NCBI GenBank assembly: GCA_977017575.1
Contig: CDRNVI010000087.1
Location: 186,001 to 250,000, forward strand
Reading direction: 5' to 3'
Length of the DNA: 64,000 nt
Source: Paramoeba atlantica
Lineage: Eukaryota > Protista > Discosea
Of the stretch, positions 545 to 28,692 are shown one piece after another; positions within the stretch are counted from its first letter, which is position 1; the number at the start of each line of letters is the position of its first letter. Under the pieces are notes generated by a model. That model was given only the letters and a program-made list of their open reading frames with translations. It did not search any database and was not told the origin of the DNA. The translations under genes and the position numbers were made by a program.

Positions 545-1333
545 ATTTTCTTTTTTAGGCTCTTCGTTAAACGCGGTGGTTGTTTTCAACTTAGAAGTCA
601 CTCATGCTGCGCGCTTCGCGTTGAAAACTACCGCCGCGTTTAACGAAGAGCCAAAAAAAGAAAATTTAGCCTGGAAAACGGAACGATTATAGCCAAAAAT
701 AGCCGAATTTCGGGTAAAAATGGGGTGATTTTCGCGTATTTTTGCTCTCAGAGCACTAAATCCGACATTTGCGCGTGGGAAATCACTCGTAGGCATGAAT
801 GGAAGCCTACCGAACGTATTGTGTAGAGAATGCGACTCCAACCATACCATTCTTTCGACACAAAAATGCCCCTTTAGGTCCGAAACATACTTTTTCACCT
901 TTTTTAGTCAAAAATGGGTCATTTTGGGGGGCGTACCACGGTTCGAAGAAGTGATACCTTGCGAAAACAACTGCTGAGAAAGCTAGTGTAGGTCCCAAAC
1001 TATCAAAATACAATAGGGGAAACGATTTTGGAAAAATATTTTTTTTGTCATTTTTTTCGCCAAGTTGAAATTTTTTTCAAAAACATTTTTCCGAAAAAAT
1101 CCGAACTTGGCGGACCCGTCCTGCGGAAACGCGGGGGGGTCACCCCCGGGTAGGGGGGTGGAAAATGCGCGCCAAGACCCCGGCTACCCTTTCTGCGGTT
1201 TTTTTTCGAAAACTAATTTTTTCGAAAAAATTTGCTCGACCATGACCCCCCCCCTGGACCCCCCCCTGGACCCCCCCTGGACCCCCCCCCCCTGGACCCC
1301 CCGGCGACCGCAGATTGATAATGCATACTAAGC
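545..1333 (+). mobile_element. Hairpin-ended non-autonomous element, 3'-truncated
   Basis: Terminal hairpin at ~556-655. The body is colinear with 12551-13323 and is the reverse complement of part of 5237-6170. It stops at gcatactaagc. Confidence 0.8.
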
Positions 1334-2728: not shown

Positions 2729-3216
2729 TATTGCATTGGACTACTCAACTTCTTAAAGCACAGCATACAATTTTTTTTTTCTCACAATACAATGTAACAT
2801 ATAATGTATCTTTTTGGATTTCACCTTTATCCTCAGTACAATGCTCAATTATGCTCTTCCGCCTGCCGAAGATGGGTTCATCTAAAACGACTTCTCCTCT
2901 CCGGATTCTGGAAATACGGCTCCTGAGAAAGTGAGTGGTATTTATACTGCCATTTATAGACTGACCCGCCCCGTTTAAGCGCACCGGGACAGCCCCCCGT
3001 TTAAGCGCACATTTTGGAAACGAGTTTTTCCCGTTTATTCCTGTCAAAGCGCAGACATCAAACGCTTTCTTGAAAACTCCTATGAAGGAGTATTGAAAGG
3101 AAAGGTATTGATTTTGCACAAATCAATGTGTTGACTGTATTCTACATGCCATAACATACATAACAACAAACAGCGATTGATTTGAAAGGCTTAAAGTTTT
3201 ACTTTTTGCATACGTT

Positions 3217-3906
3217 TTGTATATGGACGACACAGCTCCGAATTTATCATATCCACGCGCAGCCAAAGTTAGAGGGAACTTGCCACAGGAATTCAAGCTA
3301 GCGCAACTTGTCAAGGATATTGAGAATCCGTTTCTCTCCTGGAATACATCTACCTCTGCATGCAAATGGAAAGGCATTGTGTGTGCCGATGGTACACATA
3401 TCAGCGAAATATATTGGAGCGCGACCAAATCATTGCCACCGCACCTAAGATTGAAGTCTCCTTCAGGAAACGTTTTTTCCGGTAGGCTTCATTTGCAACA
3501 TTTACCGCAATCCTTGGAAAAGCTTTATGTTGCAGGAAATCGACTAAATGGAATCATGGACTTAACTCGACTTCCTCAGGGCTTAACATTTCTTTCTTTG
3601 TGTAAGAACTTTTTTTCGGGCAACGTAGTCCTTGATTGCTTACCACAGACCTTGGCACATATCAACATCGGACATAATCAGCTGACCGGGTGTCTTGATT
3701 TTCGTCACCTACCAGTAACACTGAGAGCGTTATTCTGCTACGACAATAACTTTGATACTCTAGTTCCGGTTCAAAATCTTCCCTCGGAATTAAAGTATCT
3801 CCATCTTCAAAATAATCCTGAGTTGAAAGGTGTTCTTGAAAAGTCTACTTTTCCTGCGATCCTGACAAGTGTTGACGTCACCGGCACAAGGCTCACACTC
3901 CGGTAG
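3217..3906 (+). CDS. Leucine-rich repeat protein (LRRNT-like cap plus ~5 LRRs); first ATG at 3223
   Basis: Cap KVRGNLPQEF...SWNTSTSACKWKGIVC followed by LPxxLxxLxxxxNxFxG repeats. Confidence 0.85.
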   Translation: MYMDDTAPNLSYPRAAKVRGNLPQEFKLAQLVKDIENPFLSWNTSTSACKWKGIVCADGTHISEIYWSATKSLPPHLRLKSPSGNVFSGRLHLQHLPQSLEKLYVAGNRLNGIMDLTRLPQGLTFLSLCKNFFSGNVVLDCLPQTLAHINIGHNQLTGCLDFRHLPVTLRALFCYDNNFDTLVPVQNLPSELKYLHLQNNPELKGVLEKSTFPAILTSVDVTGTRLTLR

Positions 3907-5236: not shown

Positions 5237-6170
5237 TTGCGGTGGTTGTAAAACTACCGCTCTACACTCGATTATTGAAAAAAAAGTGAACAAAAACAGT
5301 GAAAATATAAAGAGGAACACAGTAATATAATAGAAGAAAAAAATATAAAAGGGGGCTCCGGTGGTCCAAAACTGAAATTTTTTTTAACAAAAATGGGGGG
5401 TCCATGGGAGGGGGTCCAGGGGGGGGGTCCAGGGGGGGGGTCCAGGGGGGGGGTCCAGGGGGGGGGCATGGTCGAGCAAATTTTTTCGAAAAAATTAGTT
5501 TTCGAAAAAAAACCGCAGAAAGGGTAGCCGGGGTCTTGGCGCGCATTTTCCACCCCCCTACCCGGGGGTGACCCCCCCGCGTATCCGCAGGACGGGTCCG
5601 CCAAGTTCGGATTTTTTCGGAAAAAATTTTTTGAAAAAAATTTCAACTTGGCGAAAAAAATGACAAAAAAAATATTTTTCCAAAATCGCTTCGCCTATTG
5701 TATTTTGATAGTTTGGGACCTACACTAGCTTTCTACGCAGTTGTTTTCGCAAGGTATCACTTCTTCGAACTGTGGTGCGCCCCCCAAAATGACCCATTTT
5801 TGACTAAAAAAGGTGAAAAAGTATTTTTCGGACCTAAAGGGGCATTTTTGTGTCGAAAGAATGGTATGGTTGGAGTCGTATTCTCTACCCAATACGTTCG
5901 GTAGGCTTTCATTCATGCTTGCGAGTGATTTCCCACGCGCAAATGTCGGATTTAGTGCTCTGAGAGCAAAAATATGCGAAAATGACCCCATTTGTACCCG
6001 AAATTCGGCTATTTTTGGCTATAATCTTTCCGTTTTCCGGGCTAAATTTTCTTTTTTAGGCTCTTCGTTAAACGCGGCGGTAGTTTTCAACGCGAAGCGC
6101 GCAGCATCAGTGCCTTCTAAGTTGAAAGCAACCACCGCGTTTAACGAAGAGCCTAAAAAAGAAAATTTAG
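5237..6170 (-). mobile_element. Complete-looking 934-bp hairpin-ended non-autonomous element
   Basis: Absent from the paralogous segment, where the empty site reads cagtaag|tattataac at 40058/40059. Small hairpin gcggtggttgtaaaactaccgc at one end and a ~50-bp-arm hairpin at the other. Confidence 0.85.
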
Positions 6171-6423
6171 TATTATAACAGTAGTTCTTTACTATAATTT
6201 AATCTATATAATCTGTATCTATCTATATATCATTATATATAATAAACCCCCGCTCACGAATAAGTGACCCCCCCCCTTATTTTTAGCACAGGGGGGCGTG
6301 GGTGGGTTATCATACCACTTTTTCGTTCAAAATTTCGAGATCTGTACGTTCCCGCTGTTTTTAGCTCATTTTAAAATTTAGTCAAAAATAATAATTGCTT
6401 TTTCAACATTTTTTTTCCCAAAA

Positions 6424-7158
6424 ATGACCAAATTACCATATCGGCTCCCAAAAGGGGAGCTTACGGATAGTGGCAAGGTTCTTTTGAAGATGAGACAGGG
6501 AGAAGGTGTTCCGATAAAACAATTATCCCGTGATTTTAACGTCTCTAGAAGAATAATCAAAAAATATCTGAACGAAAAGAAATGTAGCGGAGAATACACT
6601 CTGAGTCCTGTGACCATTAAAAAAATCGAATCTCGCAAAAAGAAAATTGAAAAGATATTGGCTCCTCTCGACCCCGCTGGGGTACCAAAATTCAATTCTT
6701 CAAGGCGTATAAAAGGCCAACTGTGTAGGTATACAAGTTTCTACAAGTAAGGTATACAAGTTTCGCAAAGCACTGTAAAGCGAGGTCTAGCATCGCTGGA
6801 TTACAATTATGCCGCTCGGCCAGTATGCCAAGGGCTTGCCGAGCGACAAAAGCAAAAAAGAGTTCAATTTGCTTTGAATTACTGTAATTCAAATGTAATT
6901 TACAAATTGGATACTGCCCGTGTTATTTTTACGGGCGAAAAGATATTTGATACCAACGATAGCAGAAGACACATGTGGGTAAAGCGCGGTCAAAAAGCAG
7001 CCCCGCGTCAAAAAGTACGTTGGGCACCAAGATGCCAAGTTTGGGGTGCTGTAGGGGTGGAGGTATTTGGTTATTCTACGAAATGACACATCTATTACAA
7101 GTGAGACGTACATAGAAACATTAAACTTCTTTAACTCAAAAAGTGATCGACAAAATAG
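6424..7158 (+). pseudogene. Tc1-like transposase pseudogene, internally deleted
   Basis: Homologous to 40307-41309 (VIFTGEKIFDTND...PRCQVWGAVG), with frameshifts. Truncated at the pogo-like TIR. Confidence 0.8.
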
Positions 7159-7410
7159 TAAACCGGGGGACGGAATAATATTAAGTTGCTGAAACTTAAT
7201 AATAACTTGACAACTTAATAATAACCTGTCAAACTTAATAATAACCTGTCAACGTTTTGAAACTTAATATTAACTTGTCGGCGGGTTATTATTAAGTTTG
7301 TAATAAAATTAACAAATTGTTTTTTTATGTATGCAATCTTTAACAATATTTTTTTTATCTGAATCTTTACCCGACTTCATAAACTTCATAAATCTTTCTT
7401 TTCTTTACCT

Positions 7411-8890
7411 TTATTCGGTGGAGCGTCGTGGGTTACACCATTTATCGAGCCGTCCTTGGAATGATTTTCGTGCCTGGACGCTTTTCCCACGCTTAAAGGC
7501 ATCTTCGATTCTCTTAGCTTCGTCTCTCTCATCGTCATCGCTTGGTGGAACAAAGACATATCCTTCTAAACATTTCACATGCGACCACGATGCATCACAA
7601 AGGTCGATATACCCCAAGCTTTTGAATTGTTGAACAACGTTCATAGAAGAGGAAAGGGTCCCTGATTCATCAAGAGAGTCGTTGTCGAGGTTTATAACTT
7701 GTTCGTGCGCTCGGGCAACGGCATTATGCATCCATTGTCTTTTTTGGCGGGCGGTCCGACGGATATGTTGTTCTCTGTGCCAAATGTTTACTTGCTCGCG
7801 TTTGTACGAAGAAGCATAAAATACATCAATCCATTGGATCCAGGATGTTGTTGCAGGGGGTAATATGGCACAATAGCAGTTAGCCACAGTGGCAAACGCA
7901 TCGAGAACGTCACTTGTTATGTGAGATCGGAAGGAGTCTAGATAAATTAAAGTGTGGCCTGCTTCATTTATATCCAGTTCACGTTTGAGAAAGGGAATAA
8001 AGTCTTGGAGAAAAAAATCTTTGTTCACGACACCTTTCGGAGTAAAAGCTCGAGCCGTCCTTGCATCAAATATCTCGTGACTAGATCCTTCTCCAGCTCC
8101 TTTCCACACGATAAAAGGTTTTAGAAAGAAATGATTCGTTGGACTTCCATTTTTATCCAGTTTCACGCCAGCACCGCAGATAAGCGTTGCGCATCGCTTC
8201 ATATCATTCGGATTGCAACGCCCTCGTACATCTTCTTCTCCTCGCTGTGCAATTGTTTTTAAAGATTTCATGGACCCGCGAAATGATATGGGAATTTCAT
8301 CAAAATTCAGAACGGAACGAAACTTTTTTGTTTTAAGACAACGATAGGCAAACGTATGAAAGGAATGAATTCTTTTCTCTATCTCTTCACTTGATAGCTG
8401 AGTTGATCTCTTTACTAATCTTATAGACCATTTGTAAGAGTGGAGGAATCTCCCTATCCAACGTTCGCTTACTCTTGTAATCCCCCGTGTTTTGTTCTGC
8501 TCTAGTGATTTGCGGTTTTCCTTTTTCAGCATGCGAAATGCCTCTTGGCGCACCATCTCGGTTGTTACCAAAGCATCGTTCTCTCGAGCTCCAAGAATAA
8601 AATAATGCAATTGTTGTTTTAACCATTTCAGTTTATGCCCCTTTACATGCCTTTTACGCTTTTGACTATGCCTAGGGATATTAGAGTATGCCATAACTTG
8701 CTTTTTGTTAAAAATGTGGACACGTTTCTTAGGGAATCGCTCGTCGATCCAAGAGTTTAACTTGCGGTGTGATCCATAAGCATCTCGATCTTGTTGCGAC
8801 CAGGAAATCCACTTCTCATATATTACACGCTTTTGTCTAGCCGTGGGTTCCACTCGACCGCGCACACCCTGGTCTATAGGACGCCCCGTA
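7411..8890 (-). pseudogene. pogo-family (CENP-B/HTH_Tnp_Tc5 + DDE_1) transposase, C-terminal part; the acidic N-terminal part lies at ~10455-10849
   Basis: CENP-B-like helix region (VTTEMVRQEA...SERWIGRF), LNFDEIP, LIYLDSFRSH and ILPPATTSWIQWID, which is DDE_1-like. Confidence 0.8.
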
Positions 8891-8892
8891 TA

Positions 8893-10452
8893 CATGGGGG
8901 GTCACGAAAAGAGTGGGGGGTCTAAAATTTGTACCGTGCGAGCTTTTGACCTAATTCCTTCGGCATTCAACAGATCTCGAAATTTTAAGACTATGTGAGT
9001 TATAACTACTTAGGCATATAAAGTTAAGTGATAATGGTGAGTCGGCAAAAAACAGGTTTTTTTGTTTTTTGCATATTTGGATTTTCTCATTATTTCATTA
9101 TTGATCCCCCGTTTTTTTCTCGAAGAAGTCTGATTCGGGACGGGAAGCTCGTCAAAGTATTATTATACGATGCTTTCATATCAGATAATAGATAATCAAG
9201 CGCTTTTAGAATTGCAGCTTGTAGTTCCTTACGGTTTGTGGGGCGGAGAGTAAATTTTATGTGGTGATCCATCATGCTCCACAAATTTTCAATTAAATTT
9301 AAATCCGGCGACTTGGCAGGCCAATCAGGAATGCTGATACCCATGTCTCTGCCGACGCGGCGAGCGTGATTATGGCCCGGAGCGTTATCCATGATCACTG
9401 TTGCCGCTGGTTTACGCTTTAACCAGTTGTAGAAACCATTTCGTTTTGTCATGGCAGAGAGAAACGTTTCATTAGTGACCGTCTCATTCTCCGCAAACTC
9501 ATGAAAACAGTGAAGCTTGGGAACCCCCCATTCAAGGCTCACCGCCATCCAAATATGAACCCCCTTTCCTCCGAAATATTTCTCAACATCTTTTGGTACC
9601 TCAAGGGGTTCATCTGACCTTTTGCAAATGTATCAAATATTGCGTGAGTGGTACCCGCATTTAAAAATCTTTTCATCGGTCCACAGAATACGGGCGTATT
9701 GAAAAGGGGTGAACCTCTCCAAACGATTTGCCAACTCCAGGCGGTCGAATTTGTGCTGAGGCGTGAGATGAGGAACTTTCCTCATTTTTCTGCTTATGTA
9801 CCCGCTCCTTTTCAGTGATCTTTTCACAGACGAAAGAGAGCATGGGTACTTGGTTTGATCGATCGGGCGGTGAACCCACCTCCAAGATGGACAGCCAATG
9901 GGACTACGTTGATTTTCTTCATCTACAATAGATTCTAACATTATTCGAAACTCTTCATTATCAATCGCATTCTTACGTATGTATTTTATACGTTCTAACC
10001 CTCCTGTCTCCCGGTGGCGTTTAGCCCATCGAGAGACAGTTGCTTCACTGCATTTCATAAGAGCAGCAGTGTCTGTAATCGAACGTCCCTGGTTTTGTAC
10101 CTCATGGACGCAAATTACACGTGTTTCATAAGTGATTTGTTGCGTCGAGAGGGTGCGCCTCTGGCGGCGAAGTGTTTTCGGCATAAAAGATGTGTTAGAA
10201 AGAGTTAAGTGGTATTTTATTCATAGATTAATGGGCTAAAATGATAAAAAATGATAAAAATCCATTTTTTTGCAGAATTTTCAGGTAAAAAATTCAGTAA
10301 AATTTTATCATGACGTCATATCAGCTTCAGGGGCGGCAACAATGGTGCCAGTAGTCTTAAAATTTCGAGATCTGTTGAATGCCGAAGGAATTAGGTCAAA
10401 AGCTCGCACGGTACAAATTTTAGACCCCCCACCTTTTTCGTGACCCCCCCTG
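8893..10452 (-). mobile_element. Tc1/IS630-like transposon with ~100-bp TIRs and TA TSD; transposase 9090-10184 has one in-frame TGA at 9633-9635
   Basis: TIRs 8893-8992 and 10352-10452, TA at 8891-2 and 10453-4. HTH, ILWTDE, IMDNAPGH and WPAKSPDLNLIE are all in one frame. Confidence 0.9.
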
Positions 10453-11324
10453 TATACTACGCAGTGTTGTTTTTTGCGCTCGTTCACTTGTCTTTCCCTC
10501 CAACAGTCAGCTCCGCTCCGTTATCTTTATCATCCGAAGTTGAATTACTCTTAATTTTACTTTCGCTCGCACTTTCAACATTATATCCTATTTCTTCGTC
10601 TGAATTCACACTTTCACATTCGCTTTCACAATTGCTTTCACTTTCGCTCTCGCTAGCACTTTCACTTTCTCCATCGCTTCCGCTACCAATTACGTCCGAC
10701 GAGTCATCAAGCATTTCTACCCCTTCATCATCCTCAAAGGAAATAATCTCATCGTTTTCCTGAACGTAGGTTGGGTCACACTCTGCCTGAGCCAATCTAT
10801 GAAGGGTCAAACTTTCGGCAAAAAATCTCCTTCTCCCATCGAAAAACACAAACTTAATAATAACTTGACAACTTAATAATGACTTGTCCAGCTTAATAAT
10901 AACCTGTCTAGCTTAATAATAACTTGTCTAACTTAATAATAAACCGCAACTTAATAATAAACCGCATCTTAATATTATTCCGTCCCCCGGTTTATATTAT
11001 TCAAATAACGCTATATTATTCAAATAGAGCCACCTAACACTATATTATTCAAATAACACTATATTATTCAAATTCCGATTTGAATAATATACCGTTCCCC
11101 GGGTTACAAAAAATAAGGGGGGGTGCCTTTTTCATGTCTAGGGGTTTAAGCGTTTATAAGCGAGGGGGGGTTACAAAAGATGACCATACTGTATGGAAGA
11201 AGGAGGTTTAAGGAGGAAGAATAACATTTTTTTGTTCCACTAAAGAGACTACGGTGACCCCCGGTTTACGTGATATGTCAAATTTTTTACAATTGCACTC
11301 TCTTGATTTCAGCTTATTTTTTTC

Positions 11325-11966
11325 ATGCCTTCGAACTCGCAAAAATGCACGCATCTTTTCGTTATACACGCTGTAGGTGCGTCGGACACAACTCCTTCCT
11401 ACCATCGTGGCCCTTCTAAAGTCCGTGGTGTTTCGATACCACAGGAATACAAATTGGCTCGATTGATTGATGACATTGAACATAATTTTCCGTCTTGGAA
11501 GGAGTCAACACCTGCTTGTAAGTGGGATGGGGTTAAATGCGATGAACAAAGTCAAATTATCCACTTGAAGTGGGGTGGCCGTGACTTAGAAGGACAACTG
11601 AATTGGATCTATATGCCTCTTCTATTGCAATCGTTAGAGTTATGGAGGAACCAACTTACGGGCGAGGTGCCATTTGATAGTTTACCCCCCACTTTGGAAA
11701 GCCTAGTACTCCATGACAACGAATTTAACGGCAACCCCAATTTTCTGCACTTGCCCCCTCCACTCAAAGCACTAAACATTCGGTACAATAGGTTTAAGGG
11801 CCTTGTAGCGTTTTTTTCTCTTCCATCTTCTTTGCGCCGCTTAGATTTGCGAGGAAATATTTATCTGGAAGGCACTCTGGATGTCAAAGGATTGCAGGAG
11901 CATCTATGTTATGATGTTCGAGATACACATATTACAGTGGACGATGAACCATTATATCGCATATGA
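11325..11966 (+). CDS. Leucine-rich repeat protein
   Basis: KVRGVSIPQEY...SWKESTPACKWDGVKC cap plus LRRs. Confidence 0.85.
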   Translation: MPSNSQKCTHLFVIHAVGASDTTPSYHRGPSKVRGVSIPQEYKLARLIDDIEHNFPSWKESTPACKWDGVKCDEQSQIIHLKWGGRDLEGQLNWIYMPLLLQSLELWRNQLTGEVPFDSLPPTLESLVLHDNEFNGNPNFLHLPPPLKALNIRYNRFKGLVAFFSLPSSLRRLDLRGNIYLEGTLDVKGLQEHLCYDVRDTHITVDDEPLYRI

Positions 11967-13117
11967 ACACCGTCAGAAGCGCAACAAAAGTTAAGAAAGT
12001 CCAAAACTGAAGTGTAACGCTAAGTTAGGAATATTCTCGTTCCGCCACAAAGATAAAACTACGTTAAAGCAATGTAAGCTTTGCATTAGTAAACAGAATT
12101 GTGTATAAAGTTTAATTACTACGAACGACTTAATGTACAGGGGGGGTATAGTAAAGTGTACCCTGTATATTAAGGGGGGGGGTATATTGGCTCACCGTTT
12201 ATACCGGGTGGGGGGTATAATGCGGGGGGGTGGGGGGTATATTTCTTCAAAATTTGCACCCCCCTATTTAATTGTCCTTTTCCCGAAAAGCGGTGACAAT
12301 TAAGTAGGGGGAGGGACAGTGCGTAAATTCTTATGTAAACAAAACTCTATGCTCAACTAAAGGGGATTCAAAATGCTTAAAAAACAGATTTTTTTTCTTC
12401 CGCAAGTACCAAAAAAATTAATCTTTCAAACTCAAAAAAATAATTTTTTGACTACTCCCCCTTTCATTTTTACTCCCCCTTTTCATAATTCTTTATAAAC
12501 CCTGTTCCGGGTTATTGTGCCCCCCCTGCACAATAACTGGCTCTAGGCACATTCTTTTTTAGGCTCTTCGTTAAACGCGGTGGTTGTTTTCAACTTAGAA
12601 GTCACACATGCTGCGCTCTTCGCATTGAAAACTACCACCGCGTTTAACGAAGAGCCAAAAAAGGAAAATTGGCCTGGAAAGCTGAAGAAAACGGAAAGAT
12701 TATAGCCGAAAATAGCCGAATTTCGGGTAAAAATGGGGTCATTTTTGGGTATTTTTGCTCTCAAGACACTAAATCCGACATTTGCGAGTGGGAAATCACT
12801 CGTAGGTATGAATGAAAGCCTACCGCACGTATTGGGTATAGAATGCGACTCCAACCACACCATTCTATCGGCACAAAAAGGCCCCTTCGGGTCCGAAAAA
12901 TACTTTTTCACCATTTTTTAGTCAAAAATGGGTCATTTTGAGGGACGCACCACGGTTCGAAGAAGGGATACCTTGTGAAAACAACGGCCGAGAAACCTAG
13001 TATAGGTCCCAAACTATCAAAATACAATAGGGGAAACGATTTTGGAAAAATATTTTTTTTGCCATTTTTTTCGCCAAGTTGAAATTTTTTTAAAAACTTT
13101 TTTATCCGAAAAAATTC

Positions 13118-16100
13118 GAACTTGGCGGACCCGTCCTGCGGATACGCAGGGGGGCCAACCCCGGGTAGGCGGGTGGAAAATGCGCGTCAAGACCCCGGCT
13201 ACTCCTTCTGCGGTTTTTTTTCGAAAACTAATTTTTTCAAAAAAATTTGCTCGACCATGACCCCCCGGGACCCCCCCCCCCCATGGACCCCCCGGCGCCC
13301 GCAGATTGATAATGCATACTAAGCGGCACATTGATAATGCATATAGCACATTGATATTGCATATAGCACATTGATAATGCATATAGCACATTGACCTTCA
13401 GAATTTTATTTGACCTCCAGAGTTTCCCAACGTAAAACCAAACGCCTAGACACCGAGGCCCGGGAAACTATCGCAGTGCTCTATAATCAACAAGGCTTCT
13501 CGCAAGAAGAAATAGCAGAAAAACTGGGAGAAAGCCAGGCTACTGTGAGCCGGGAGCTCAAGCGAGGCGCACGTCTCGGCGAGTACAGTGCAAAGCGTGC
13601 GCAAGGGACGAGTGAAAAAGCCATGACAAAACGCAAGGGGAAGAAGCTTAAGATTTCCGGTTCAATGCGACATAAAGTTCTCTGAACTTTAAAATCTGAA
13701 CTTGGCGGACCCGTCCTGCGGATACGCGGGGGGGTCACCCCCGGGTAGGCGGGTGGAAAATGCGCGCCAAGACCCCGGCTACTCCTTCTGCGTTTTGTTT
13801 TCGAAAACTAATTTTTTCAAAAAAATTTGCTCGACCATGACCCCCCGGGACCCCCCCCCCATGGACCCCCCGGCGCCCGCAGATTGATAATGCATACTAA
13901 GCGGCACATTGATAATGCATATAGCACATTGACCTTCAGAATTTTATTTGACCTCCAGAGTTTCCCAACGTAAAACCAAACGCCTAGACACCGAGGCCCG
14001 GGAAACTATCGCAGTGCTCTATAATCAACAAGGCTTCTCGCAAGAAGAAATAGCAGAAAAACTGGGAGAAAGCCAGGCTACTGTGAGCCGGGAGCTCAAG
14101 CGAGGCGCACGTCTCGGCGAGTACAGTGCAAAGCGTGCGCAAGGGACGAGTTAAAAAGCCATGACAAAACGCAAGGGGAAGAAGCTTAAGATTTCCGGTT
14201 CAATGCGACATAAAGTTCTCTGAACTTTAAAATCTGAACTTGGCGGACCCGTCCTGCGGATACGCGGGGGGGTCACCCCCGGGTAGGCGGGTGGAAAATG
14301 CGCGCCAAGACCCCGGCTACTCCTTCTGCGTTTTGTTTTCGAAAACTAATTTTTTCAAAAAAATTTGCTCGACCATGACCCCCCGGGACCCCCCCCCCCC
14401 ATGGACCCCCCGGCGCCCGCAGATTGATAATGCATACTAAGCGGCACATTGATAATGCATATAGCACATTGATATTGCATATAGCACATTGATAATGCAT
14501 ATAGCACATTGACCTTCAGAATTTTATTTGACCTCCAGAGTTTCCCAACGTAAAACCAAACGCCTAGACACCGAGGCCCGGGAAACTATCGCAGTGCTCT
14601 ATAATCAACAAGGCTTCTCGCAAGAAGAAATAGCAGAAAAACTGGGAGAAAGCCAGGCTACTGTGAGCCGGGAGCTCAAGCGAGGCGCACGTCTCGGCGA
14701 GTACAGTACAAAGCGTGCGCAAGGGACGAGTGAAAAAGCCATGACAAAACGCAAGGGGAAGAAGCTTAAGATTTCCGGTTCAATGCGACATAAAGTTCTC
14801 TGAACTTTAAAATCTGAACTTGGCGGACCCGTCCTGCGGATACGCGGGGGGGTCACCCCCGGGTAGGTGGGTGGAAAATGCGCGCCAAGACCCCGGCTAC
14901 TCCTTCTGCGTTTTGTTTTCGAAAACTAATTTTTTCAAAAAAATTTGCTCGACCATGACCCCCCTGGACCCCCCCCCCCATAGACCCCCCGGCGCCCGCA
15001 GATTGATAATGCATATAGCACATTGATATTGCATATAGCACATTGATAATGCATATAGCACCTCGACCTTCAGAATTTTATTTGACCTCCAGAATGTCAG
15101 TTTCCCAACGTAAAACCAAACGCCTAGACACCGAGGCCCGGGAAACTATCGCAGTGCTCTATAATCAACAAGGCTTCTCGCAAGAAGAAATAGCAGAAAA
15201 ACTGGGAGAAAGCCAGGCTACTGTGAGCCGGGAGCTCAAGCGAGGCGCACGTCTCGGCGAGTACAGTGCAAAGCGTGCGCAAGGGACGAGTTAAAAAGCC
15301 ATGACAAAACGCAAGGGGAAGAAGCTTAAGATTTCCGGTTCAATGCGACATAAAGTTCTCTGAACTTTAAAATCTGAACTTGGCGGACCCGTCCTGCGGA
15401 TACGCGGGGGGGTCACCCCCGGGTAGGCGGGTGGAAAATGCGCGCCAAGACCCCGGCTACTCCTTCTGCGGTTTTTTTTCGAAAACTAATTTTTTCAAAA
15501 AAATTTGCTCGACCATGACCCCCCGGGACCCCCCCCCCCCCCATGGACCCCCCGGCGCCCGCAGATTGATAATGCATACTAAGCGGCACATTGATAATGC
15601 ATATAGCACATTGATATTGCATATAGCACATTGATAATGCATATAGCACATTGACCTTCAGAATTTTATTTGACCTCCAGAGTTTCCCAACGTAAAACCA
15701 AACGCCTAGACACCGAGGCCCGGGAAACTATCGCAGTGCTCTATAATCAACAAGGCTTCTCGCAAGAAGAAATAGCAGAAAAACTGGGAGAAAGCCAGGC
15801 TACTGTGAGCCGGGAGCTCAAGCGAGGCGCACGTCTCGGCGAGTACAGTACAAAGCGTGCGCAAGGGACGAGTGAAAAAGCCATGACAAAACGCAAGGGG
15901 AAGAAGCTTAAGATTTCCGGTTCAATGCGACATAAAGTTCTCTGAACTTTAAAATCTGAACTTGGCGGACCCGTCCTGCGGATACGCGGGGGGGTCACCC
16001 CCGGGTAGGTGGGTGGAAAATGCGCGCCAAGACCCCGGCTACTCCTTCTGCGGTTTTTTTTCGAAAACTAATTTTTTCAAAAAAATTTGCTCGACCATGA

Positions 16101-18240
16101 CCCCCCTGGACCCCCCCCCAATAGACCCCCCGGCGCCCGCAGATTGATAATGCATATAGCACATTGATATTGCATATAGCACATTGATAATGCATATAGC
16201 ACCTCGACCTTCAGAATTTTATTTGACCTCCAGAATGTCAGTTTCCCAACGTAAAACCAAACGCCTAGACACCGAGGCCCGGGAAACTATCGCAGTGCTC
16301 TATAATCAACAAGGCTTCTCGCAAGAAGAAATAGCAGAAAAACTGGGAGAAAGCCAGGCTACTGTGAGCCGGGAGCTCAAGCGAGGCGCACGTCTCGGCG
16401 AGTACAGTGCAAAGCGTGCGCAAGGGACGAGTGAAAAAGCCATGACAAAACGCAAGGGGAAGAAGCTTAAGATTTCCGGTTCAATGCGACATAAAGTTCT
16501 CTGAACTTTAAAATCTGAACTTGGCGGACCCGTCCTGCGGATACGCGGGGGGGTCACCCCCGGGTAGGCGGGTGGAAAATGCGCGCCAAGACCCCGGCTA
16601 CTCCTTCTGCGGTTTTTTTTCGAAAACTAATTTTTTCAAAAAAATTTGCTCGACCATGACCCCCCGGGACCCCCCCCCCCCATGGACCCCCCGGCGCCCG
16701 CAGATTGATAATGCATACTAAGCGGCACATTGATAATGCATATAGCACATTGATATTGCATATAGCACATTGATAATGCATATAGCACATTGACCTTCAG
16801 AATTTTATTTGACCTCCAGAGTTTCCCAACGTAAAACCAAACGCCTAGACACCGAGGCCCGGGAAACTATCGCAGTGCTCTATAATCAACAAGGCTTCTC
16901 GCAAGAAGAAATAGCAGAAAAACTGGGAGAAAGCCAGGCTACTGTGAGCCGGGAGCTCAAGCGAGGCGCACGTCTCGGCGAGTACAGTACAAAGCGTGCG
17001 CAAGGGACGAGTGAAAAAGCCATGACAAAACGCAAGGGGAAGAAGCTTAAGATTTCCGGTTCAATGCGACATAAAGTTCTCTGAACTTTAAAATCTGAAC
17101 TTGGCGGACCCGTCCTGCGGATACGCGGGGGGGTCACCCCCGGGTAGGTGGGTGGAAAATGCGCGCCAAGACCCCGGCTACTCCTTCTGCGGTTTTTTTT
17201 CGAAAACTAATTTTTTCAAAAAAATTTGCTCGACCATGACCCCCCTGGACCCCCCCCCAATAGACCCCCCGGCGCCCGCAGATTGATAATGCATATAGCA
17301 CATTGATATTGCATATAGCACATTGATAATGCATATAGCACCTCGACCTTCAGAATTTTATTTGACCTCCAGAATGTCAGTTTCCCAACGTAAAACCAAA
17401 CGCCTAGACACCGAGGCCCGGGAAACTATCGCAGTGCTCTATAATCAACAAGGCTTCTCGCAAGAAGAAATAGCAGAAAAACTGGGAGAAAGCCAGGCTA
17501 CTGTGAGCCGGGAGCTCAAGCGAGGCGCACGTCTCGGCGAGTACAGTGCAAAGCGTGCGCAAGGGACGAGTGAAAAAGCCATGACAAAACGCAAGGGGAA
17601 GAAGCTTAAGATTTCCGGTTCAATGCGACATAAAGTTCTCTGAACTTTAAAATCTGAACTTGGCGGACCCGTCCTGCGGATACGCGGGGGGGTCACCCCC
17701 GGGTAGGCGGGTGGAAAATGCGCGCCAAGACCCCGGCTACTCCTTCTGCGGTTTTTTTTCGAAAACTAATTTTTTCAAAAAAATTTGCTCGACCATGACC
17801 CCCCGGGACCCCCCCCCCCATGGACCCCCCGGCGCCCGCAGATTGATAATGCATACTAAGCGGCACATTGATAATGCATATAGCACATTGATATTGCATA
17901 TAGCATATTGATAATGCATATAGCACATTGACCTTAAGAATTTTATTTGACCTCCAGAATGTCAGTTTCCCAACGTAAAACCAAACGCCTAGACACCGAG
18001 GCCCGGGAAACTATCGCAGTGCTCTATAATCAACAAGGCTTCTCGCAAGAAGAAATAGCAGAAAAACTGGGAGAAAGCCAGGCTACTGTGAGCCGGGAGC
18101 TCAAGCGAGGCGCACGTCTCGGCGGGTACAGTACAAAGCGTGCGCAAGGGACGAGTGAAAAAGCCATGACAAAACGCAAGGGGAAGAAGCTTAAGATTTC
18201 CGGTTCAATGCGACATAAAGTTCTCTGAACTTTAAAATCT
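13118..18240 (+). repeat. Tandem array of 9 units of 538-585 bp (element core + gcatatagcacattgataat microrepeat + IS30-type HTH fragment), with a ~1140-bp dimeric higher-order repeat
   Basis: Unit starts (gaacttggcgg) at 13118, 13698, 14236, 14816, 15376, 15958, 16517, 17097, 17656 and 18241. Confidence 0.95.
16235..16504 (+). CDS. 89-aa IS30-family transposase N-terminal HTH fragment (ATG-bearing copy; others at 17374-17643 and 17959-18228)
   Basis: GFSQEEIAEKLGESQATVSRELKRG...GEYSAKRAQ matches the IS30 HTH_38 pattern (SxREIAxxLGRSxSTISRELKRN...YxAxxAQ). No DDE domain. Confidence 0.7.
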   Translation: MSVSQRKTKRLDTEARETIAVLYNQQGFSQEEIAEKLGESQATVSRELKRGARLGEYSAKRAQGTSEKAMTKRKGKKLKISGSMRHKVL

Positions 18241-18846
18241 GAACTTGGCGGACCCGTCCTGCGGATACGCGGGGGGGTCACCCCCGGGTAGGCGGGTGGA
18301 AAATGCGCGTCAAGACCCCGGCTACCCCTTCTGCGTTTTTTTTTCGAAAACTAATTTTTTCGAAAAAATTTGCTCGACCATGACCCCCCTGGACCCCCCC
18401 CTGGACCCCCTCCTGGACCCCATTTTTTTCAATTTTTTTTTTCAATTTTGGACCACCGGTTGGAGCCCCCTTTTATATTTTTTTCATTTATTATATTACT
18501 GTGTTCCTCTTTATAGTTTCACTGTTTTTGTACCCTTTTTTTTCAATAACCGAGGGTAGAGCAGTAGTTTTACAACCACCGCAATAATCGGGGGTAGAGC
18601 GGTTTTACAACCACCGCAATGTGCTCTAACTGTTGCCTTATCAAATTTTCCGTGCATTCAAAATGTTTTTCTGACATGTTTTTACATATTGCTGCACTTT
18701 TTCGCCGTGATAGTACGCTTGTTAGTGGGGAAGAAGCGCGAGATGATCGGCTGAAGTTCGCCGGAGAAAACCCGGCGATTTAGGCCTTCTTCAAAGGGCA
18801 TATTCAAGCCCTTTTAAATATGGCCGCGCAGTGGGAGCTTTTAAAT

Positions 18847-20728: not shown

Positions 20729-21523
20729 ATGACAAAACCACAATTTTTCACAAAAAAATTTTACATTTCCCCTTTTTTCATGTTTCCTTCGTATCTTCCT
20801 ACCCCTCGTGGGTTTCACAGTGTGGACCCAAGCCCCCCAGCCCCATCGAGTGCTCGACCGGCCAAAGTCCGTGGGGTGAGCCTCCCGGAGGAGTACTTGC
20901 TCGTCCATTTCATCTCTAACCTCTCCAATCCGCACGCGAGCTGGAGTACGCACGTCCCTGCGTGCTCGTGGCACGAGGTTCGTTGTGGTTCGGAGAAATT
21001 TGTCGAGGGCGTCCACTGGGGACGACGCCTGTTTCAGGCGGACGCCTTCGCCTCCCCCCTGGAGGGGTCGGTGTGCTGGGAGACACCCTTCCCGCCCCAT
21101 CTTACCCACGTGGAGTTGTTTAACCACCATTTAGAAGGAAAAATCAGTTTTTCGTTTTTTCCTGCAACGCTTACCTACCTTGTGGTGAGTCGAAACCGTT
21201 TGGCGGGAGCAGTCGAACTCGATCACCTCCCTCCTTGCCTTGTGGAGCTGAATTTAGCGAGTAACTTCTTTAGTGGAATGTTGGATCTCACAGGACTCCC
21301 TAGGACGTTAAAGTCGCTGCACCTCGGGCGAAATCGATTTTCCGGACCGGTACAATTGGATGCACTGCCGCCGAACCTTCTTGAGCTGCTGTTGTATGAG
21401 AATCCGATAACCGGGGAGGCTGATTTTTGTAAATTCCCCCCGAGTTTGCAGCGACTGGGTCTTGTGCGCACGCGAATCAAATATTTAAATGAGGACTCCT
21501 CCTATCGTTTCGTGTTGGTGTAA
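20729..21523 (+). CDS. Leucine-rich repeat protein
   Basis: RPAKVRGVSLPEEY...PACSWHEVRC cap plus LRRs. Confidence 0.85.
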   Translation: MTKPQFFTKKFYISPFFMFPSYLPTPRGFHSVDPSPPAPSSARPAKVRGVSLPEEYLLVHFISNLSNPHASWSTHVPACSWHEVRCGSEKFVEGVHWGRRLFQADAFASPLEGSVCWETPFPPHLTHVELFNHHLEGKISFSFFPATLTYLVVSRNRLAGAVELDHLPPCLVELNLASNFFSGMLDLTGLPRTLKSLHLGRNRFSGPVQLDALPPNLLELLLYENPITGEADFCKFPPSLQRLGLVRTRIKYLNEDSSYRFVLV

Positions 21524-21762
21524 TAGGAAGAGAAAAATGTATGGGCGCCCGACATATTGTACAAAAAAAAGTGTGCGCATTTTTTTGAGTATAAAAAGAA
21601 TGAGTACATGTTTTGTTCATTTTTTTTTCAATTCTGATTTAGACCGCAGTTGGATGGATTACGAGAAATAACCATTTTTTGACTATGTTCCACTGCGTTC
21701 ATCCCGAAACAGTTTATCTCATATCATTGTTTTAACGTGCGACAATGTCTTAGTAAATAGAG

Positions 21763-23454
21763 ATGATTTATATTTATCCTATGAATCTCAAAACCGAAAC
21801 GCATGATGAACAATCACCCCCTATAAAACGTAGGAAATTACATCAAGACATTGCGAGTAACAGTAAACCTTTTGATCATTCGAGTCGTCCTGGCAAAATA
21901 CGTGGGACAGTTCTACCACAAGAATATGAGCTGGAACGACTTGTGTCGGACGTACTGTACCCTGAACCATCCTGGAACATATCCACACCTGCGTGCAATT
22001 GGGCAAGAGTATTTTGTAACGAACAAGGAGAGGTGACAGAAATTATGTGGTACACTGACTCAGACTTCGCCATCGGGCGATATTCTGGAACATTGCATTT
22101 GGCTCATCTTCCCAGAACCCTTTTGCGAGTATCCGTGTCAGCCAACGACTTTTCTGGATCCGATTGTCTAGACAATTTGCCGCCAAATCTGACCTACCTT
22201 GATCTCAGTTTCAACGAGTTTACTGGTACATTAAACCTTTCTTTGTTTCCGCCAACGTTGCGACTAATTGATTTGCAACATAACTTCTTTGAAGGTGGCA
22301 TAGATTTCGGTAGCCTCCCGGCGGATTTAAAGGTATTGCAAGTGAGTAGAAATTGGTTTTTTTCAGGCACCAGCCAATCTGACCAGGGCATGAATCTTGG
22401 TGCACTTCCGATTCACATGGAAGTTTTTAGTGTTACACAAAACAAATTTTCAGGAAAGTTATACCTCAATAATTTGCCGAACTCGCTTATGCGCCTCCAT
22501 GTTGGGCGGAACGAACTGACGGGGACGCTTGATTTGCAAGGTCTGCCATCATCACTTGCGTTCATAGATCTATCACATAACCAATTTTATGGTTCGCTCC
22601 AGTTTGATTCCCTTCCAAGTAACCTTACCTCATTTCTCGCGTCGGCCAACAACTTTACGAGCGTGTCGAGTCTAGACAAGCTACCGAACGGAGTGGCCGA
22701 GTTGAATCTCTCCGCAAATGAGTTGACCGGAACGTTAGACTTACGACACTTACCCGACAATCTTAGGGACCTTAATCTTTGGTGTAACAGGTTCACAGGA
22801 GAGATCGATCTTCGATTCCTACCTACTTTGCTTAATCGCCTCCTTTTAGACCGCAACAAGCTATACGGGTCATTGGATCTCAGTGCATTGCCCGAAAGAT
22901 TGAATCTGCTGGACATCAGCAATAATAAGTTTGTGGGCCCTTTTAATTTAGGCGCATTTCCACCCTCACTCGAGATTATACGAATCGCACGCAATCATTT
23001 TGTGGGTAAGCTTCAACTCAGCAATTTGCCCAAATTTTGCCTTGAATTTATCGCTAGCCATAACAGGTTTTCAGGTGCGCTCGATTTGCGAAATATGCCG
23101 GGAGAGCTCGAAACCCTAAAACTTGATCACAATCGTTTCGGCGGCGTCCCCGATCTTACCTCTCTCCCTGGAGGTCTTGAAACCCTTTTACTCGACCATA
23201 ACGGTTTGGAGGGAAAGATCGTACTACGAGATTCGCTCCCCGATCGGATATCGACCTTAACGCTAAACGTTAACCCCAAGCTCCGTGTAGCCCTCAAGTG
23301 CGTATCCACCCATGGCTGTGTAAATATTAAGTTTGACGCCAATCCTATGGGGGTTGTCAAGGATCAGGGAAAAGACGAAGAAGAAGATGGTGAGGACGCG
23401 AGCCGTAAGCCGAGCGCTGCGACCTGCACGCTTACGCTTACTGCCTACGAATAG
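21763..23454 (+). CDS. Long leucine-rich repeat protein (563 aa, ~18 repeats of ~22 aa) with an NLS-like PPIKRRKL
   Basis: Same family cap followed by many LxxLPxxLxxLxLxxNxFxG repeats. Confidence 0.9.
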   Translation: MIYIYPMNLKTETHDEQSPPIKRRKLHQDIASNSKPFDHSSRPGKIRGTVLPQEYELERLVSDVLYPEPSWNISTPACNWARVFCNEQGEVTEIMWYTDSDFAIGRYSGTLHLAHLPRTLLRVSVSANDFSGSDCLDNLPPNLTYLDLSFNEFTGTLNLSLFPPTLRLIDLQHNFFEGGIDFGSLPADLKVLQVSRNWFFSGTSQSDQGMNLGALPIHMEVFSVTQNKFSGKLYLNNLPNSLMRLHVGRNELTGTLDLQGLPSSLAFIDLSHNQFYGSLQFDSLPSNLTSFLASANNFTSVSSLDKLPNGVAELNLSANELTGTLDLRHLPDNLRDLNLWCNRFTGEIDLRFLPTLLNRLLLDRNKLYGSLDLSALPERLNLLDISNNKFVGPFNLGAFPPSLEIIRIARNHFVGKLQLSNLPKFCLEFIASHNRFSGALDLRNMPGELETLKLDHNRFGGVPDLTSLPGGLETLLLDHNGLEGKIVLRDSLPDRISTLTLNVNPKLRVALKCVSTHGCVNIKFDANPMGVVKDQGKDEEEDGEDASRKPSAATCTLTLTAYE

Positions 23455-24978: not shown

Positions 24979-27900
24979 GGGGGAGTAGGGGGTAAAAGGG
25001 AGGGATAGGGGGAAGAAGAGGAAGGAAGGAATAAAGGATAGGGTAAGAATGTGGGTGTTGTGTGTGTGTGTAGATTTTATAGGAAAAACGTTTTTAAAAG
25101 GTGTCATCAAAAGGTTCGTTTAGGGTTAGGGGGGTTGGTTTGTAAGAAAAGTATCCTGTTACACAAAGAACCCTTTTTTGGCAAAATGTATTGATTGGGA
25201 AGCAAAGGGAATGAGGAGGAATTCTAGGTAAAATTGTAGATAAAACTGGATTTGCATGACACAATTGGAGATGCACCCCTATAAATGTCTTGCATTTTGT
25301 TCGATTTTGAAAATCTGTTGTCTACCACCGTTTTTCGACCCATGTATTTGTTTCGACCCATTGTATTGTGGGCGACGCTGCAGCACCGCGCGGAGGTGCG
25401 GCGGTGGGGGGCGTACGTGGGGGCCGGGACGGTGTTTGGGGAGCAGGCCAGGGGGATGGAGAGGACGGGGGTGGTGGAGGAGTTTATCGCGGTGAGGGGG
25501 GAGGGGGGGAGGGGGGAGGGGGGGTAGGGGGTAAAAAGGAGGATAGGGGGAAAAGAGGAAGGAAGGAATAAAGGATAGGGTAGGAATGTGGGTGTTGTGT
25601 GTGTGTGTGTGTGTGTAGATTTTATAGGAAAAAGGTTTCATAAAAAGGTTCGTTTAGGGTTGGGGGGGTTGGTTTGTAAGAAAAGTATCCTGTTATAAAA
25701 AGAACCCTTTTCGGTAAAATATATTGATTGGGAAGCAAAGGGAATGAGGTAGAATTCTAGGTGAAATTGTAAATAAAACTGGATTTGCATGACACAATTG
25801 GAGATGCACCCCTACAGATGTCTTGTATTTGGTTCGATTTTGAAAATCTGTTGTATACCACCGTTTTTCGACCCATGTATTTGTTTCGACCCATTGTATT
25901 GTGGGCGACGCTGCAGCACCGCGCGGAGGTGCGGCGGTGGGGGGCGTACGTGGGGGCCGGGACGGTGTTTGGGGAGCAGGCCAGGGGGATGGAGAGGACG
26001 GGGGTGGTGGATGAGTTTAGCGCGGTGAGGGGGGAGGGGGGGAGGGGGTTGTAGGGGGGTGTAGGGGGGATAGGGGGGATAGGGGGAAAAGAGGAAGGAA
26101 GGAAAAAATATAAACGATAGGGTAGGAGTGTGGGTGTTGTGTGTGTGTGTGTAGATTTTATAGGAAAAAGGTTTCATAAAAAGGTTCGTTTAGGGTTGGG
26201 GGGGTTGGTTTGTAAGAAAAGTATCCTGTTATAAAAAGAACCCTTTTTTGGCAAAATATTTTGATTGGGAAGCAAAGGGAATGAGGGAGAATTCTAGGTG
26301 AAATTGTAAATAAAACTGGATTTGCATGACACAATTGGAGATGCACCCCTACAGATGTCTTGTATTTGGTTCGATTTTGAAAATCTGTTGTCTACCACCG
26401 TTTTTCGACCCATGTATTTGTTTCGACCCATTGTATTGTGGGCGACGCTGCAGCACCGCGCGGAGGTGCGGCGGTGGGGGGCGTACGTGGGGGCCGGGAC
26501 GGTGTTTGGGGAGCAGGCCAGGGGGATGGAGAGGACGAGGGTGGTGGAGGAGTTTATCGCGGTGAGGGGGGAGGGGGGGAGGGGGTTGTAGGGGGGTGTA
26601 GGGGGGATAGGGGGGATAGGGGGAAAAGAGGAAGGAAGGAAAAAATATAAACGATAGGGTAGGTGTGTGGGTGTTGTGTGTGTGTGTGTGTGTAGATTTT
26701 ATAGGAAAAAGGTTTCATAAAAAGGTTCGTTTAGGGTTAGGGGGGTTGGTTTGTAAGAAAAGTATCCTGTTACACAAAGAACCCTTTTTTGGCAAAATGT
26801 ATTGATTGGGAAGCAAAGGGAATGAGGGGGAATTAGGTAAAATTGTAGATAAAACTGGATTTGCATGACACAATTGGAGATGCACCCCTACAGATGTCTT
26901 GTATTTTGTTCGATTTTGAAAATCTGTTGTCTACCACCGTTTTTCGACCCATGTATTTGTTTCGACCCATTGTATTGTGGGCGACGCTGCAGCACCGCGC
27001 GGAGGTGCGGCGGTGGGGGGCGTACGTGGGGGCCGGGACGGTGTTTGGGGAGCAGGCCAGGGGGATGGAGAGGACGGGGGTGGTGGATGAGTTTAGCGCG
27101 GTGAGGGGGGAGGGGGGTAGGGGGGAGTAGGGGGGAGTAGGGTGTAAAAGGGAGGGATAGGGTGAAAAGAGGAAGGAAGGAATAAACGATAGGGTAAGAA
27201 TGTGTGTGTGTGTAGATTTTATAGGAAAAAGGTTTCATAAAAAGGTTCGTGTAGGGTTAGGGCGGTTGGTGTCTAAGAAATATATCCTGTTACAAAAAGA
27301 ACCCTTTTCGGTAAAACATATTGGTTGGAAAACAAAAGGAATGAGGGGGAATTCTAGGGTAAATTGTAGATAAAACTGGATTTGCATGACATAATTGGAG
27401 AGGTACCCCCACAAATGTATGTACCCCTATAAATGTCTTGTATTTTGTTCGATTTTGAAAATCTGTTGTCTACCACCGTTTTTCGACCCATGTATTTGTT
27501 TCGACCCATTGTATTGTGGGCGACGCTGCAGCACCGCGCGGAGGTGCAGCGGTGGGGGGCGTACGTGGGGGCCGGGACGGTGTTTGGGGAGCAGGCCAGG
27601 GGGATGGAGAGGACGGGGGTGGTGGAGGAGTTTATCGCGGTGAGGGGGGAGGGAGGGAGGGGGGTGTAGGGGGGAGTAGGGGGTAAAAGGGAGGGATAGG
27701 GGGATGAAGAGGAAGGAAGGAATAAAGGATAGGGTAAGAATGTGGGTGTTGTGTGTGTGTGTGTGTGTAGATTTTATAGGAAAAAGGTTTCATAAAAAGG
27801 TTCGTTTAGGGTTAGGGGGGTTGGTTTGTAAGAAAAGTATCCCGTTATAAAAAGAACCCTTTTTTGGCAAAATATTTTGATTGGGAAGCAAAGGGAATGA

Positions 27901-28692
27901 GGGGGAATTCTAGGGTAAATTGTAGATAAAACTGGATTTGCATGACACAATTGGAGAGGTACCCCCACAAATGTATGTACCCCTATAAATGTCTTGTATT
28001 TTGTTCGATTTTGAAAATCTGTTGTCTACCACCGTTTTTCGACCCACGTATTTGTTTCGACCCATTGTATTGTGGGCGACGCTGCAGCACCGCGGGGAGG
28101 TGCGGCGGTGGGGGGCGTACGTGGGGGCCGGGACGGTGTTTGGGGAGCAGGCCAGGGGGATGGAGAGGACGGGGGTGGTGGAGGAGTTTATCGCGGTGAG
28201 GGGGGAGGGGGGGAGGGGGGAGGGGGGGAGTAGGGGGTAAAAGGGAGGGATAGGGTGAAAAGAGGAAGGAAGGAATAAAGGATAGGGTAAGAATGTGTGT
28301 GTGTGTGTGTAGATTTTATAGGAAAAAGGTTTCATAAAAAGGTTCGTTTAGGGTTAGGGGGGTTGGTGTCTAAGAAATATATCCTGTTACAAAAAGAACC
28401 CTTTTCGGTAAAACATATTGATTGGGAAACAAAGGGAATGAGGGGGAATTCTAGGTGAAATTGTAGATAAAACTGGAATTGCATGACACAATTGGAGATG
28501 CACCCCTACAGATGTCTTGTATTTTGTTCGATTTTGAAAATCTGTTGTCTACCACCGTTTTTCGACCCATGTATTTGTTTCGACCCATTGTATTGTGGGC
28601 GACGCTGCAGCACCGCGCGGAGGTGCGGCGGTGGGGGGCGTACGTGGGGGCCGGGACGGTGTTTGGGGAGCAGGCCAGGGGGATGGAGAGGA
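24824..28692 (+). repeat. Tandem array of 523-556-bp units made from the last ~155 bp of the ATPTB6-like CDS plus its downstream region (7 full units + 1 partial)
   Basis: tgtgggcgacgctgcagcac starts at 24824, 25367, 25900, 26437, 26976, 27515, 28071 and 28594. Units contain G-runs and (GT)n. Confidence 0.95.

Follow-up and report, generated by a model that had tools for sequence, protein, structure and literature searches.

The 64,000-nucleotide stretch of Paramoeba atlantica DNA analysed here (contig CDRNVI010000087.1; hereafter the window) contains a tandem array at 13118..18240 (+), in which the left end of an IS30-type transposon, including the helix-turn-helix (HTH) part of its transposase gene, is repeated together with a segment of a host repeat. 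The nine tandem copies reported in the original prediction were recovered with exact bounds and periods. Nine head-to-tail units, u1 to u9, start at 13118, 13698, 14236, 14816, 15376, 15958, 16517, 17097 and 17656, with periods of 580, 538, 580, 560, 582, 559, 580, 559 and 585 bp, and are more than 98% identical to one another. Each unit consists of a host-repeat segment (X_B, 174-178 bp), followed by the transposon left end (350-396 bp) and a 14-nt joint. In u6, which we use as a representative, the transposon fragment occupies 16132..16502 (+) and comprises the terminus GGCGCCCGCAG, 20-bp repeats at 16139, 16159 and 16179, a leader whose 3′ end reads ...CCTCCAG immediately before the ATG, and codons 1-89. 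The 20-bp repeats (GCACATTGATAATGCATATA; for example the mini-array at 13326..13394, +) are presumed to be transposase-binding repeats of the parent element, and 31 of them, including the terminal variant, are distributed over the nine units at two to four per unit. The joint GAACTTTAAAATCT, found at 16503..16516 (+) in u6, is identical in all nine units. No unit contains a right transposon end; each carries the left terminus only, and no right end adjoins the array.

The units belong to two alternating subtypes. A-type units (u1, u3, u5 and u7) have four 20-mers and lack the ATG, and B-type units (u4, u6 and u8) have a 25-bp deletion within the 20-mer region and keep the ATG, with u2 and u9 being mosaics of the two. 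Because the subtypes alternate, the pairs u5-u6 and u7-u8 form a higher-order repeat of ~1140 bp, and the A/B dimer occurs three times in the array. This higher-order repeat, the spread of an ATG deletion to five units including an edge unit, and a unit composition that differs between assemblies are together the pattern of concerted evolution. The comparison between assemblies was made possible by a separately assembled ENA contig, ctg2400l (L003, L006), which is 99.97% identical to window positions 5471-13090 (7.6 kb) and then enters the array. Its units measure 590 and 570 bp, and it ends inside the array after ~2.6 units. The independent contig and the eukaryotic flanks exclude bacterial contamination, which had earlier been judged unlikely for an array lying within a host repeat family. 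Additionally, contigs from three public DNA runs span the joint from transposon through filler to X_B without mismatch, and the joint leading from X_B to the next terminus ('goes back 562') was seen as well. Between 59 and 68% of the unit's sampled words are present in four DNA-type runs of one study. Word depth over the coding fragment is ~8.5-15x that of the unique right flank in three runs, which is a rough guide and gives no copy number.

All nine units contain an HTH reading frame with the motifs TVSRELKR and GEYS(A/T)KRAQ, so that the IS30 N-terminal hallmarks noticed previously stand. The HTH is of the IS30 type and not of the Tc1/mariner type. Every copy tested matches Pfam HTH_38 (PF13936) at 43.5-44 bits (cutoff 27, E ~2e-11), well above other HTH families. 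Against NCBIfam transpos_IS30 (NF033563), for which the cutoff of 80 bits applies to the whole protein, residues 45-88 align to model positions 2-44 at 21 bits, below that cutoff. Residues 1-89 keep the full HTH_38 domain and the basic linker, and end just before a conserved LLxxRFSPQQI helix. The DDE catalytic core, present in the parent family, is wholly absent from the array peptide, and no DDE-coding remnant occurs anywhere in the 64-kb window. None of the long open reading frames (ORFs) of the window is an IS30 transposase; they encode leucine-rich repeat (LRR) proteins, a PIF/Harbinger DDE protein and others.

The further claim that each unit encodes an 89-91-aa peptide holds only if bacterial start codons are admitted. 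The parental ATG has been removed from u1, u2, u3, u5 and u7 by one 6-bp deletion that spread through the array, a GAA>TAA nonsense change is present in u2 and u4, and an ATG with an open 89-codon frame is kept only in u6, u8 and u9 (three of nine). The ATG-initiated HTH-only ORF of u6 (16235..16504, +), which matches HTH_38, is identical in sequence to that of u8 (17374-17643, +), while the ORF of u9 (17959-18228, +) carries E>G and A>T missense changes and the copy in u4 (15094-15294, +) is cut short by its premature stop. Coding substitutions within the array comprise two missense changes and one nonsense change, with no synonymous change. Variable sites are found at 3 of 265 coding columns, 4 of 88 columns of element 5′ non-coding sequence and 14 of 174 X_B columns, numbers that are too few and too confounded for a selection test. 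AlphaFold models the 89-aa product as a three-helix HTH followed by a short hairpin and a fourth helix, with a mean pLDDT of 83 and values above 90 for residues ~10-70. A Foldseek search of this model against the PDB returned nothing significant, the top rows being generic DNA-bound HTH domains. Judging from the model, the product could be a stand-alone DNA binder. The array unit was matched in no RNA run, and the lone putative RNA run gave nothing, which is too thin a sample to show silence.

The parent of the array peptide was identified by searching 1.84 billion representative proteins exhaustively and without a profile. The 295-aa protein P0001 is 99% identical to the peptide across residues 3-89 and then extends further; it scores 100.4 bits against the NCBIfam IS30 model, passing the cutoff of 80, and carries the DDE core. 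Its coding DNA (L001) belongs to ENA assembly ERZ24900291 of the same organism and lies in an element of ~2.2 kb. This element opens with the terminus GGCGCCCGCAC. Next come 15.4 copies of its 20-bp repeat GCACATTGATAATGCATATA and a short leader, after which the ATG starts a transposase gene with one frameshift, and an inverted array of the same 20-mers is found at the far (right) end. The array units align base for base to L001 (1026-1651), from the terminus through codon 89, with differences at three coding positions, of which two are synonymous. Array and L001 have the same left boundary although their flanks are unrelated, which identifies it as a genuine element end. Of the two origins offered by the original prediction, an unrecognised eukaryotic IS30-like family is the one upheld, as this organism also harbours a complete element that shares the terminus and the 20-mers and whose N-terminus is 99% identical. 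The other, capture of an IS30 fragment in a horizontal transfer of its own, is not supported; what the array contains broke off a resident transposon that had inserted into a host repeat. The data show that the source is a resident eukaryotic IS30-type transposon family.

Two relatives of P0001 (P0005 and P0007) are 53-54% identical to the array peptide and score 210 and 124 bits against NCBIfam IS30. P0005 is encoded on a 122-kb contig between kinesin, PIG-P and HSP90-family genes, the last of which scores 496 bits as a eukaryotic HSP90/endoplasmin versus 341 bits as a bacterial HtpG, and inverted arrays of related 20-mers flank it. These arrays (L002:4722-4972 and 6586-6806) use another 20-mer, of the GCACATTCACATGCATA type, than the subfamily of L001 and the array, while both have a common outer motif, ...GCACATT(T/G)ATAATGCATACTAAGCGG. 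The end repeats seem to diverge along with the transposase subfamilies. A word search with P0005 returned ENA-only proteins on long contigs at 57-89% identity, and the next tier consisted of bacterial or metagenomic IS30 transposases at 43-48%, the named ones being from Verrucomicrobiota. Plasmid-borne IS30 proteins are ~40% identical to the array peptide. In a maximum-likelihood tree, four full-length protist proteins are separated from the rest by a branch supported at 99/97, with a stem of 0.94 and deep internal branches. The literature searched contained no description of an IS30 lineage in eukaryotes or euglenozoans. To our knowledge, the standard lists of eukaryotic DNA-transposon superfamilies contain no IS30 lineage either.

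Alignment to the parent also allowed us to interrogate the point at which the transposon sequence ends. Homology to L001 stops after codon 89, the last shared bases reading ...AAAGTTCTCT or, in another extent, ...CATAAAGTTCTCT. The parent continues past the break as CCCTTCTGGAAAAACGA, reading KVL-SLLEKRFSPQQI, and every unit instead has the 14-nt joint and then X_B. Within the joint, GAACTTTA is the reverse complement of transposase bases located 3 nt upstream (AAAGTTC-TCT-GAACTTT(A)). The resulting palindrome has an 8-nt stem and a 3-nt loop, a match that random filler reaches in ~4 of 10,000 trials (P ~4e-4). The remaining AAAATCT matches X just upstream of X_B, and the TGA stop of the 89-codon ORF is created by the joint. 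Such a palindromic filler is the pattern of snap-back templated synthesis during end joining, and the sequence suggests that this was the pathway used. Two earlier readings of the same bases fall away. The DNA past the stop had been read as KVLELLKSEL, a continuation of IS30; the parent reads KVL-SLLEKRFSPQQI in unrelated DNA, the array has 14-nt filler and X at this place, and an in-frame KVLELLKSEL as decayed IS30 continuation is ruled out by the alignment. The fragment had also been described as joined to the host at a GAACTT microhomology, but the parent has no GAACTT at the break, and the first GAACTT is filler, the reverse complement of AAAGTTC. As a separate candidate, tandem junctions of the IS30 dimer type made by the transposase are ruled out, with no right end present and one common, non-terminal breakpoint in all units.

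The host repeat, which we call X, is present in the window at 548-1333 (+), 6163-5237 (-) and 43980-44430, and as the array-bearing copy at 12552-13117 plus 18241-18620. The left part of this resident copy (X_A, 12552..13117, +) is 89-91% identical to window positions 548-1100 and 6163-5611. X is ~950 bp long, starts with a hairpin, has mutually reverse-complementary ends (GCGGTGGTTGT ... ACAACCACCGC) and contains an internal (CCCCCCTGGACC)n run. Its word depth of ~1000x the unique flank in three runs suggests that it is very abundant in the genome, and X may be a very abundant non-autonomous DNA element. The uninterrupted copy of X_B and its continuation X_C at 5237..5608 (-) provides an empty site, from which the transposon insertion point is read as ...GGACCCCCC/ATTTTT..., with the slash marking the insertion. 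A solo junction between X and the transposon terminus (GGCGACCGCAGATTG...) is located at 1303..1333 (+), where the element sequence breaks off after 31 nt at an unrelated duplicated segment that recurs at 36125-38031. It has the same G variant of the terminus as the array, and could be what is left of the original insertion or mark a second insertion at a favoured site.

The two edges of the array are complementary mosaics. In the X_B of u1 (13118..13293, +), four variants private to the resident X (A31, C38, A41 and T70) occur within columns 1-70, and the rest is as in the inner units. In the terminal X_B (X_B10; 18241..18420, +), columns 1-69 are as in the inner units, and from column 70 onwards it has T70, C86 and G122 of the resident or generic X. 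Other X copies also have C86 and G122, whereas all array units have T86 and A122. X_B10 continues into X_C (18421..18620, +), which is a normal continuation of X as in 5440-5237(-), and bears neither a remnant nor a footprint of the transposon. The four private variants of u1 recur in unit one of the independent contig (h_u1), which assigns them to the resident X copy and makes the left edge older than the split of the two versions. Divergence at the edges is ~5%, versus ~1% between the units and the parent. From these seven sites and the missing remainder of the element, we infer that the unit arose from another X copy and entered the resident copy by homologous recombination in X_B. The import could have taken place when a circular multimer integrated, or through unequal exchange or conversion.

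We consider it likely that the array is a young, decaying transposon-derived tandem repeat, a by-product of DNA repair and recombination acting on the protist's own IS30-derived transposon, in which the HTH-only frames are passengers and the array has most likely no function of its own. The common joint in nine of nine units and a source element traced base for base are what a transposon-derived tandem repeat presents. The course of events can be proposed in four steps. A resident element, with its terminus GGCGCCCGCA, 20-bp repeat array, short leader and IS30-family transposase gene, inserted into an X copy at ...GGACCCCCC, as the filled and empty sites show. A break after codon 89 may then have been repaired by end joining, with snap-back filler, onto X ~7 nt upstream of X_B, which would yield a chimeric unit of 540-590 bp with an accidental TGA stop. 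This unit was probably multiplied and homogenised by unequal exchange, conversion or rolling-circle copying of a circular unit, giving the two-unit higher-order repeat whose composition differs between two assemblies. Finally, the edge mosaics and the missing remainder of the element point to a multimer that would have entered the present X copy via homologous recombination within X_B.

Several observations weigh against this reading. The state T at column 70 in both edge copies is not predicted by a single clean crossover and needs a short conversion tract or a polymorphic donor, and neither a donor locus nor a donor circle was found. Neither the right edge nor the full array is spanned by an independent contig or a long read; the T-rich edge from X_B to X_C is unbridged by short Logan contigs, and the right junction and the copy number come from one assembly. 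The other points concern the absence of function, and also speak for a rival that we regard as rather doubtful, namely that the array is a working locus for taming the transposon. Intact copies would make an 89-aa, DNA-binding-only repressor acting at the 20-bp element-end repeats, similar to KP of the P element, and the 31 arrayed 20-mers with nine left termini would soak up transposase. The coding part is the least variable portion of the unit (3/265 versus 14/174 in X_B and 4/88 in the 5′ non-coding part), the ORFs are co-oriented with the flanking LRR genes, all three visible units of ctg2400l keep the ATG and an open frame, and the 89-aa product, with its whole HTH_38 module, is modelled as a confident HTH fold. 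Additionally, the HTH frame is paired in cis with the presumed binding repeats, and the leader ends in a pyrimidine-rich stretch and AG right before the ATG. Against such a locus, six of the nine copies lack the ATG or contain a stop, the ATG deletion has spread through the array, and every coding change alters the protein. The stop codon and C-terminus arose by chance at the joint, the HTH is itself presumed to bind the 20-mer, and the RNA runs described above provide no match. Moreover, no second HTH-only array turned up, the other N-terminal fragment (P0116) being solitary and beside a long interspersed nuclear element (LINE). A variant, in which read-through transcription yields the HTH-only protein, and repressor and binding-site sink were made together by one repair accident and then amplified, appears to us no less doubtful.

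The other rivals concern how the array came to be where it is. Growth in place is unlikely, but it would be the simplest route to the first tandem duplication: X_B and the transposon end would be duplicated where the element first inserted, through a replication template switch or unequal sister exchange, and the remainder of the element would later be lost by excision or exchange with an empty X. A founding event that happened once would explain the single joint type, and the solo junction 12 kb upstream shows that such insertions occur nearby. In-place duplication is nevertheless a poor fit because the rest of the element would follow the last unit, and X_B10 runs into normal X_C, so that an extra, scarless loss of ~1.8 kb of element is required. 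The inner units are also generic at the four resident-private positions and unit-specific at columns 86 and 122, where the terminal X_B differs, and the contrast between divergence at the edges and divergence from the parent is hard to obtain in place. An assembly artefact, in which an over-expanded or mis-joined repeat hides only one or two real units, is very improbable. It could draw on the ENA contig that stops inside the array and on the lack of read-level spanning evidence, but unit-to-unit joints are present in the runs, the word depth of the coding fragment is, as a rough guide, many-fold that of the flank, and an ordered A/B alternation with unit-specific variants is unlike the usual collapse or expansion error. 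Direct horizontal capture of a bacterial IS30 piece, bacterial contamination or an assembly chimera is least credible and nearly negligible. The domain type is otherwise bacterial, with Verrucomicrobiota IS30 transposases as the closest named relatives, yet the full 99%-identical element is in the same organism and the closest bacterial sequences reach only 40-48% identity. The surroundings are those of a eukaryote (LRR genes, Tc1-like and PIF-like elements), and the left junction is found in two assemblies and the joint in three runs.

Comparison with known systems places the array among transposon-derived tandem repeats and young satellites of the sort described in animals and plants. Arrays can grow from transposon dimers, as with hobo, which reached ~16 copies in Drosophila (McGurk & Barbash 2018, PMC5932611), and Bari1 and R1 of Drosophila provide other cases (PMC5932611; reviews PMC9659126, PMC12628747). 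Like these, the present array has head-to-tail transposon copies, a single founding junction, recombination-driven expansion and homogenisation, a higher-order repeat, and differences in copy number and composition between assemblies. Unlike hobo-type arrays, which are built from a whole element or a double-insertion dimer, its unit is a host-repeat segment plus a truncated left end with a snap-back filler joint, and its source is the IS30 family, which we did not find described in eukaryotes in the literature searched. As in bacterial IS30 transposases (NF033563; PF13936), the array peptide represents the conserved N-terminal HTH, and its full-length parent scores above the family cutoff and contains the DDE core. 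Unlike them, the array copies have no catalytic domain, the host is eukaryotic, and identity to bacterial members is at most 48%. The parent itself also differs from bacterial IS30 elements, which have simple short inverted repeats, in its long 20-bp repeat arrays at the ends, and it lacks the first HTH ahead of HTH_38. Where an IS30 element has two inverted ends, the array has a single (left) end. With no DDE core, no second end and a score below the whole-protein cutoff, the array is a fragment of an IS30 element and not an IS30 transposase or insertion sequence.

DNA-binding-only transposase derivatives such as P-element KP, IS1 InsA and IS911 OrfA repress their own families. The array ORFs may be compared with them by analogy, as an N-terminal DNA-binding domain without catalytic domain, derived from a deleted element copy; this KP-type architecture is encoded by u6, u8 and u9 only. 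Unlike in those systems, most array copies are disabled, and the truncation is a repair accident and not an internal deletion of a mobile copy. The fragment is also immobile, with one end only, unlike KP. The array on its own is ordinary genome debris of a known kind, and the more surprising finding, corroborated here, is an IS30-type family in a eukaryote. Indeed, the filled versus empty site in the host repeat is independent evidence that IS30-type transposons of this protist moved inside the nucleus. The array additionally offers an unusually clean snapshot of the birth of a satellite, with a repair signature in its joint, a source that is still 99% identical, and edges that record recombination. 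It is also a natural experiment for HTH recognition of the 20-bp end repeats, as the two are paired and the catalytic domain is omitted.

Other matches to the array peptide differ in arrangement. In P0002, P0003, P0004 and many other matches of 350-1100 aa, the peptide aligns in 5-12 consecutive stretches. They are thus chains of HTH_38-like modules, and may be real multi-HTH proteins or read-through translations of tandem arrays like the present one. An HTH-only match, P0096, comes from an unrelated metagenome. At L005:5851-5958, a perfect tandem repeat of 18 bp x 6 (TTTACAAAAAACTTGATC) sits between a non-LTR (long terminal repeat) retrotransposon encoding endonuclease, reverse transcriptase (RT) and RNase H and a solitary N-terminal fragment, which belongs to another IS30-type subfamily.

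The window as a whole has a eukaryotic setting, with LRR proteins, a PIF/Harbinger DDE gene, Tc1-like fragments and a retrotransposon. No Rfam family or tRNA was matched anywhere in the 64 kb. Several eukaryotic DNA transposon families share the window with the IS30-type fragments. At 9090-10184 (-), separate HTH_Tnp_Tc3_2 and DDE_3 ORFs represent a split Tc1-type transposase (labelled with Pfam names in the gene table of the ENA contig), and at 30433-31440 (-) lies a PIF/Harbinger DDE_Tnp_4 ORF of 335 aa. Over ~3.5 kb at 25000-28500, the GC skew is constant and very strong (+0.48 to +0.59) at ~48% GC; this is G-run-rich, low-complexity DNA with no tandem-repeat call by TRF. LRR proteins with LRRNT_2-type N-termini and weak FNIP-repeat matches are encoded on the + strand at 3217-3906, 11325-11966, 20729-23454, 42443-43453 and 52525-53475. 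Positions 1335-3198 and 36125-38031 hold two copies, 94% identical, of a segment at least 1.9 kb long. This segment includes the decayed remains of a Tc1/mariner-like gene (...DDNAPGHK..., minus strand) and continues into paralogous LRR genes, and its left edge is located inside a short palindrome, TGTAGTCCAA/GTTGGACTACA.

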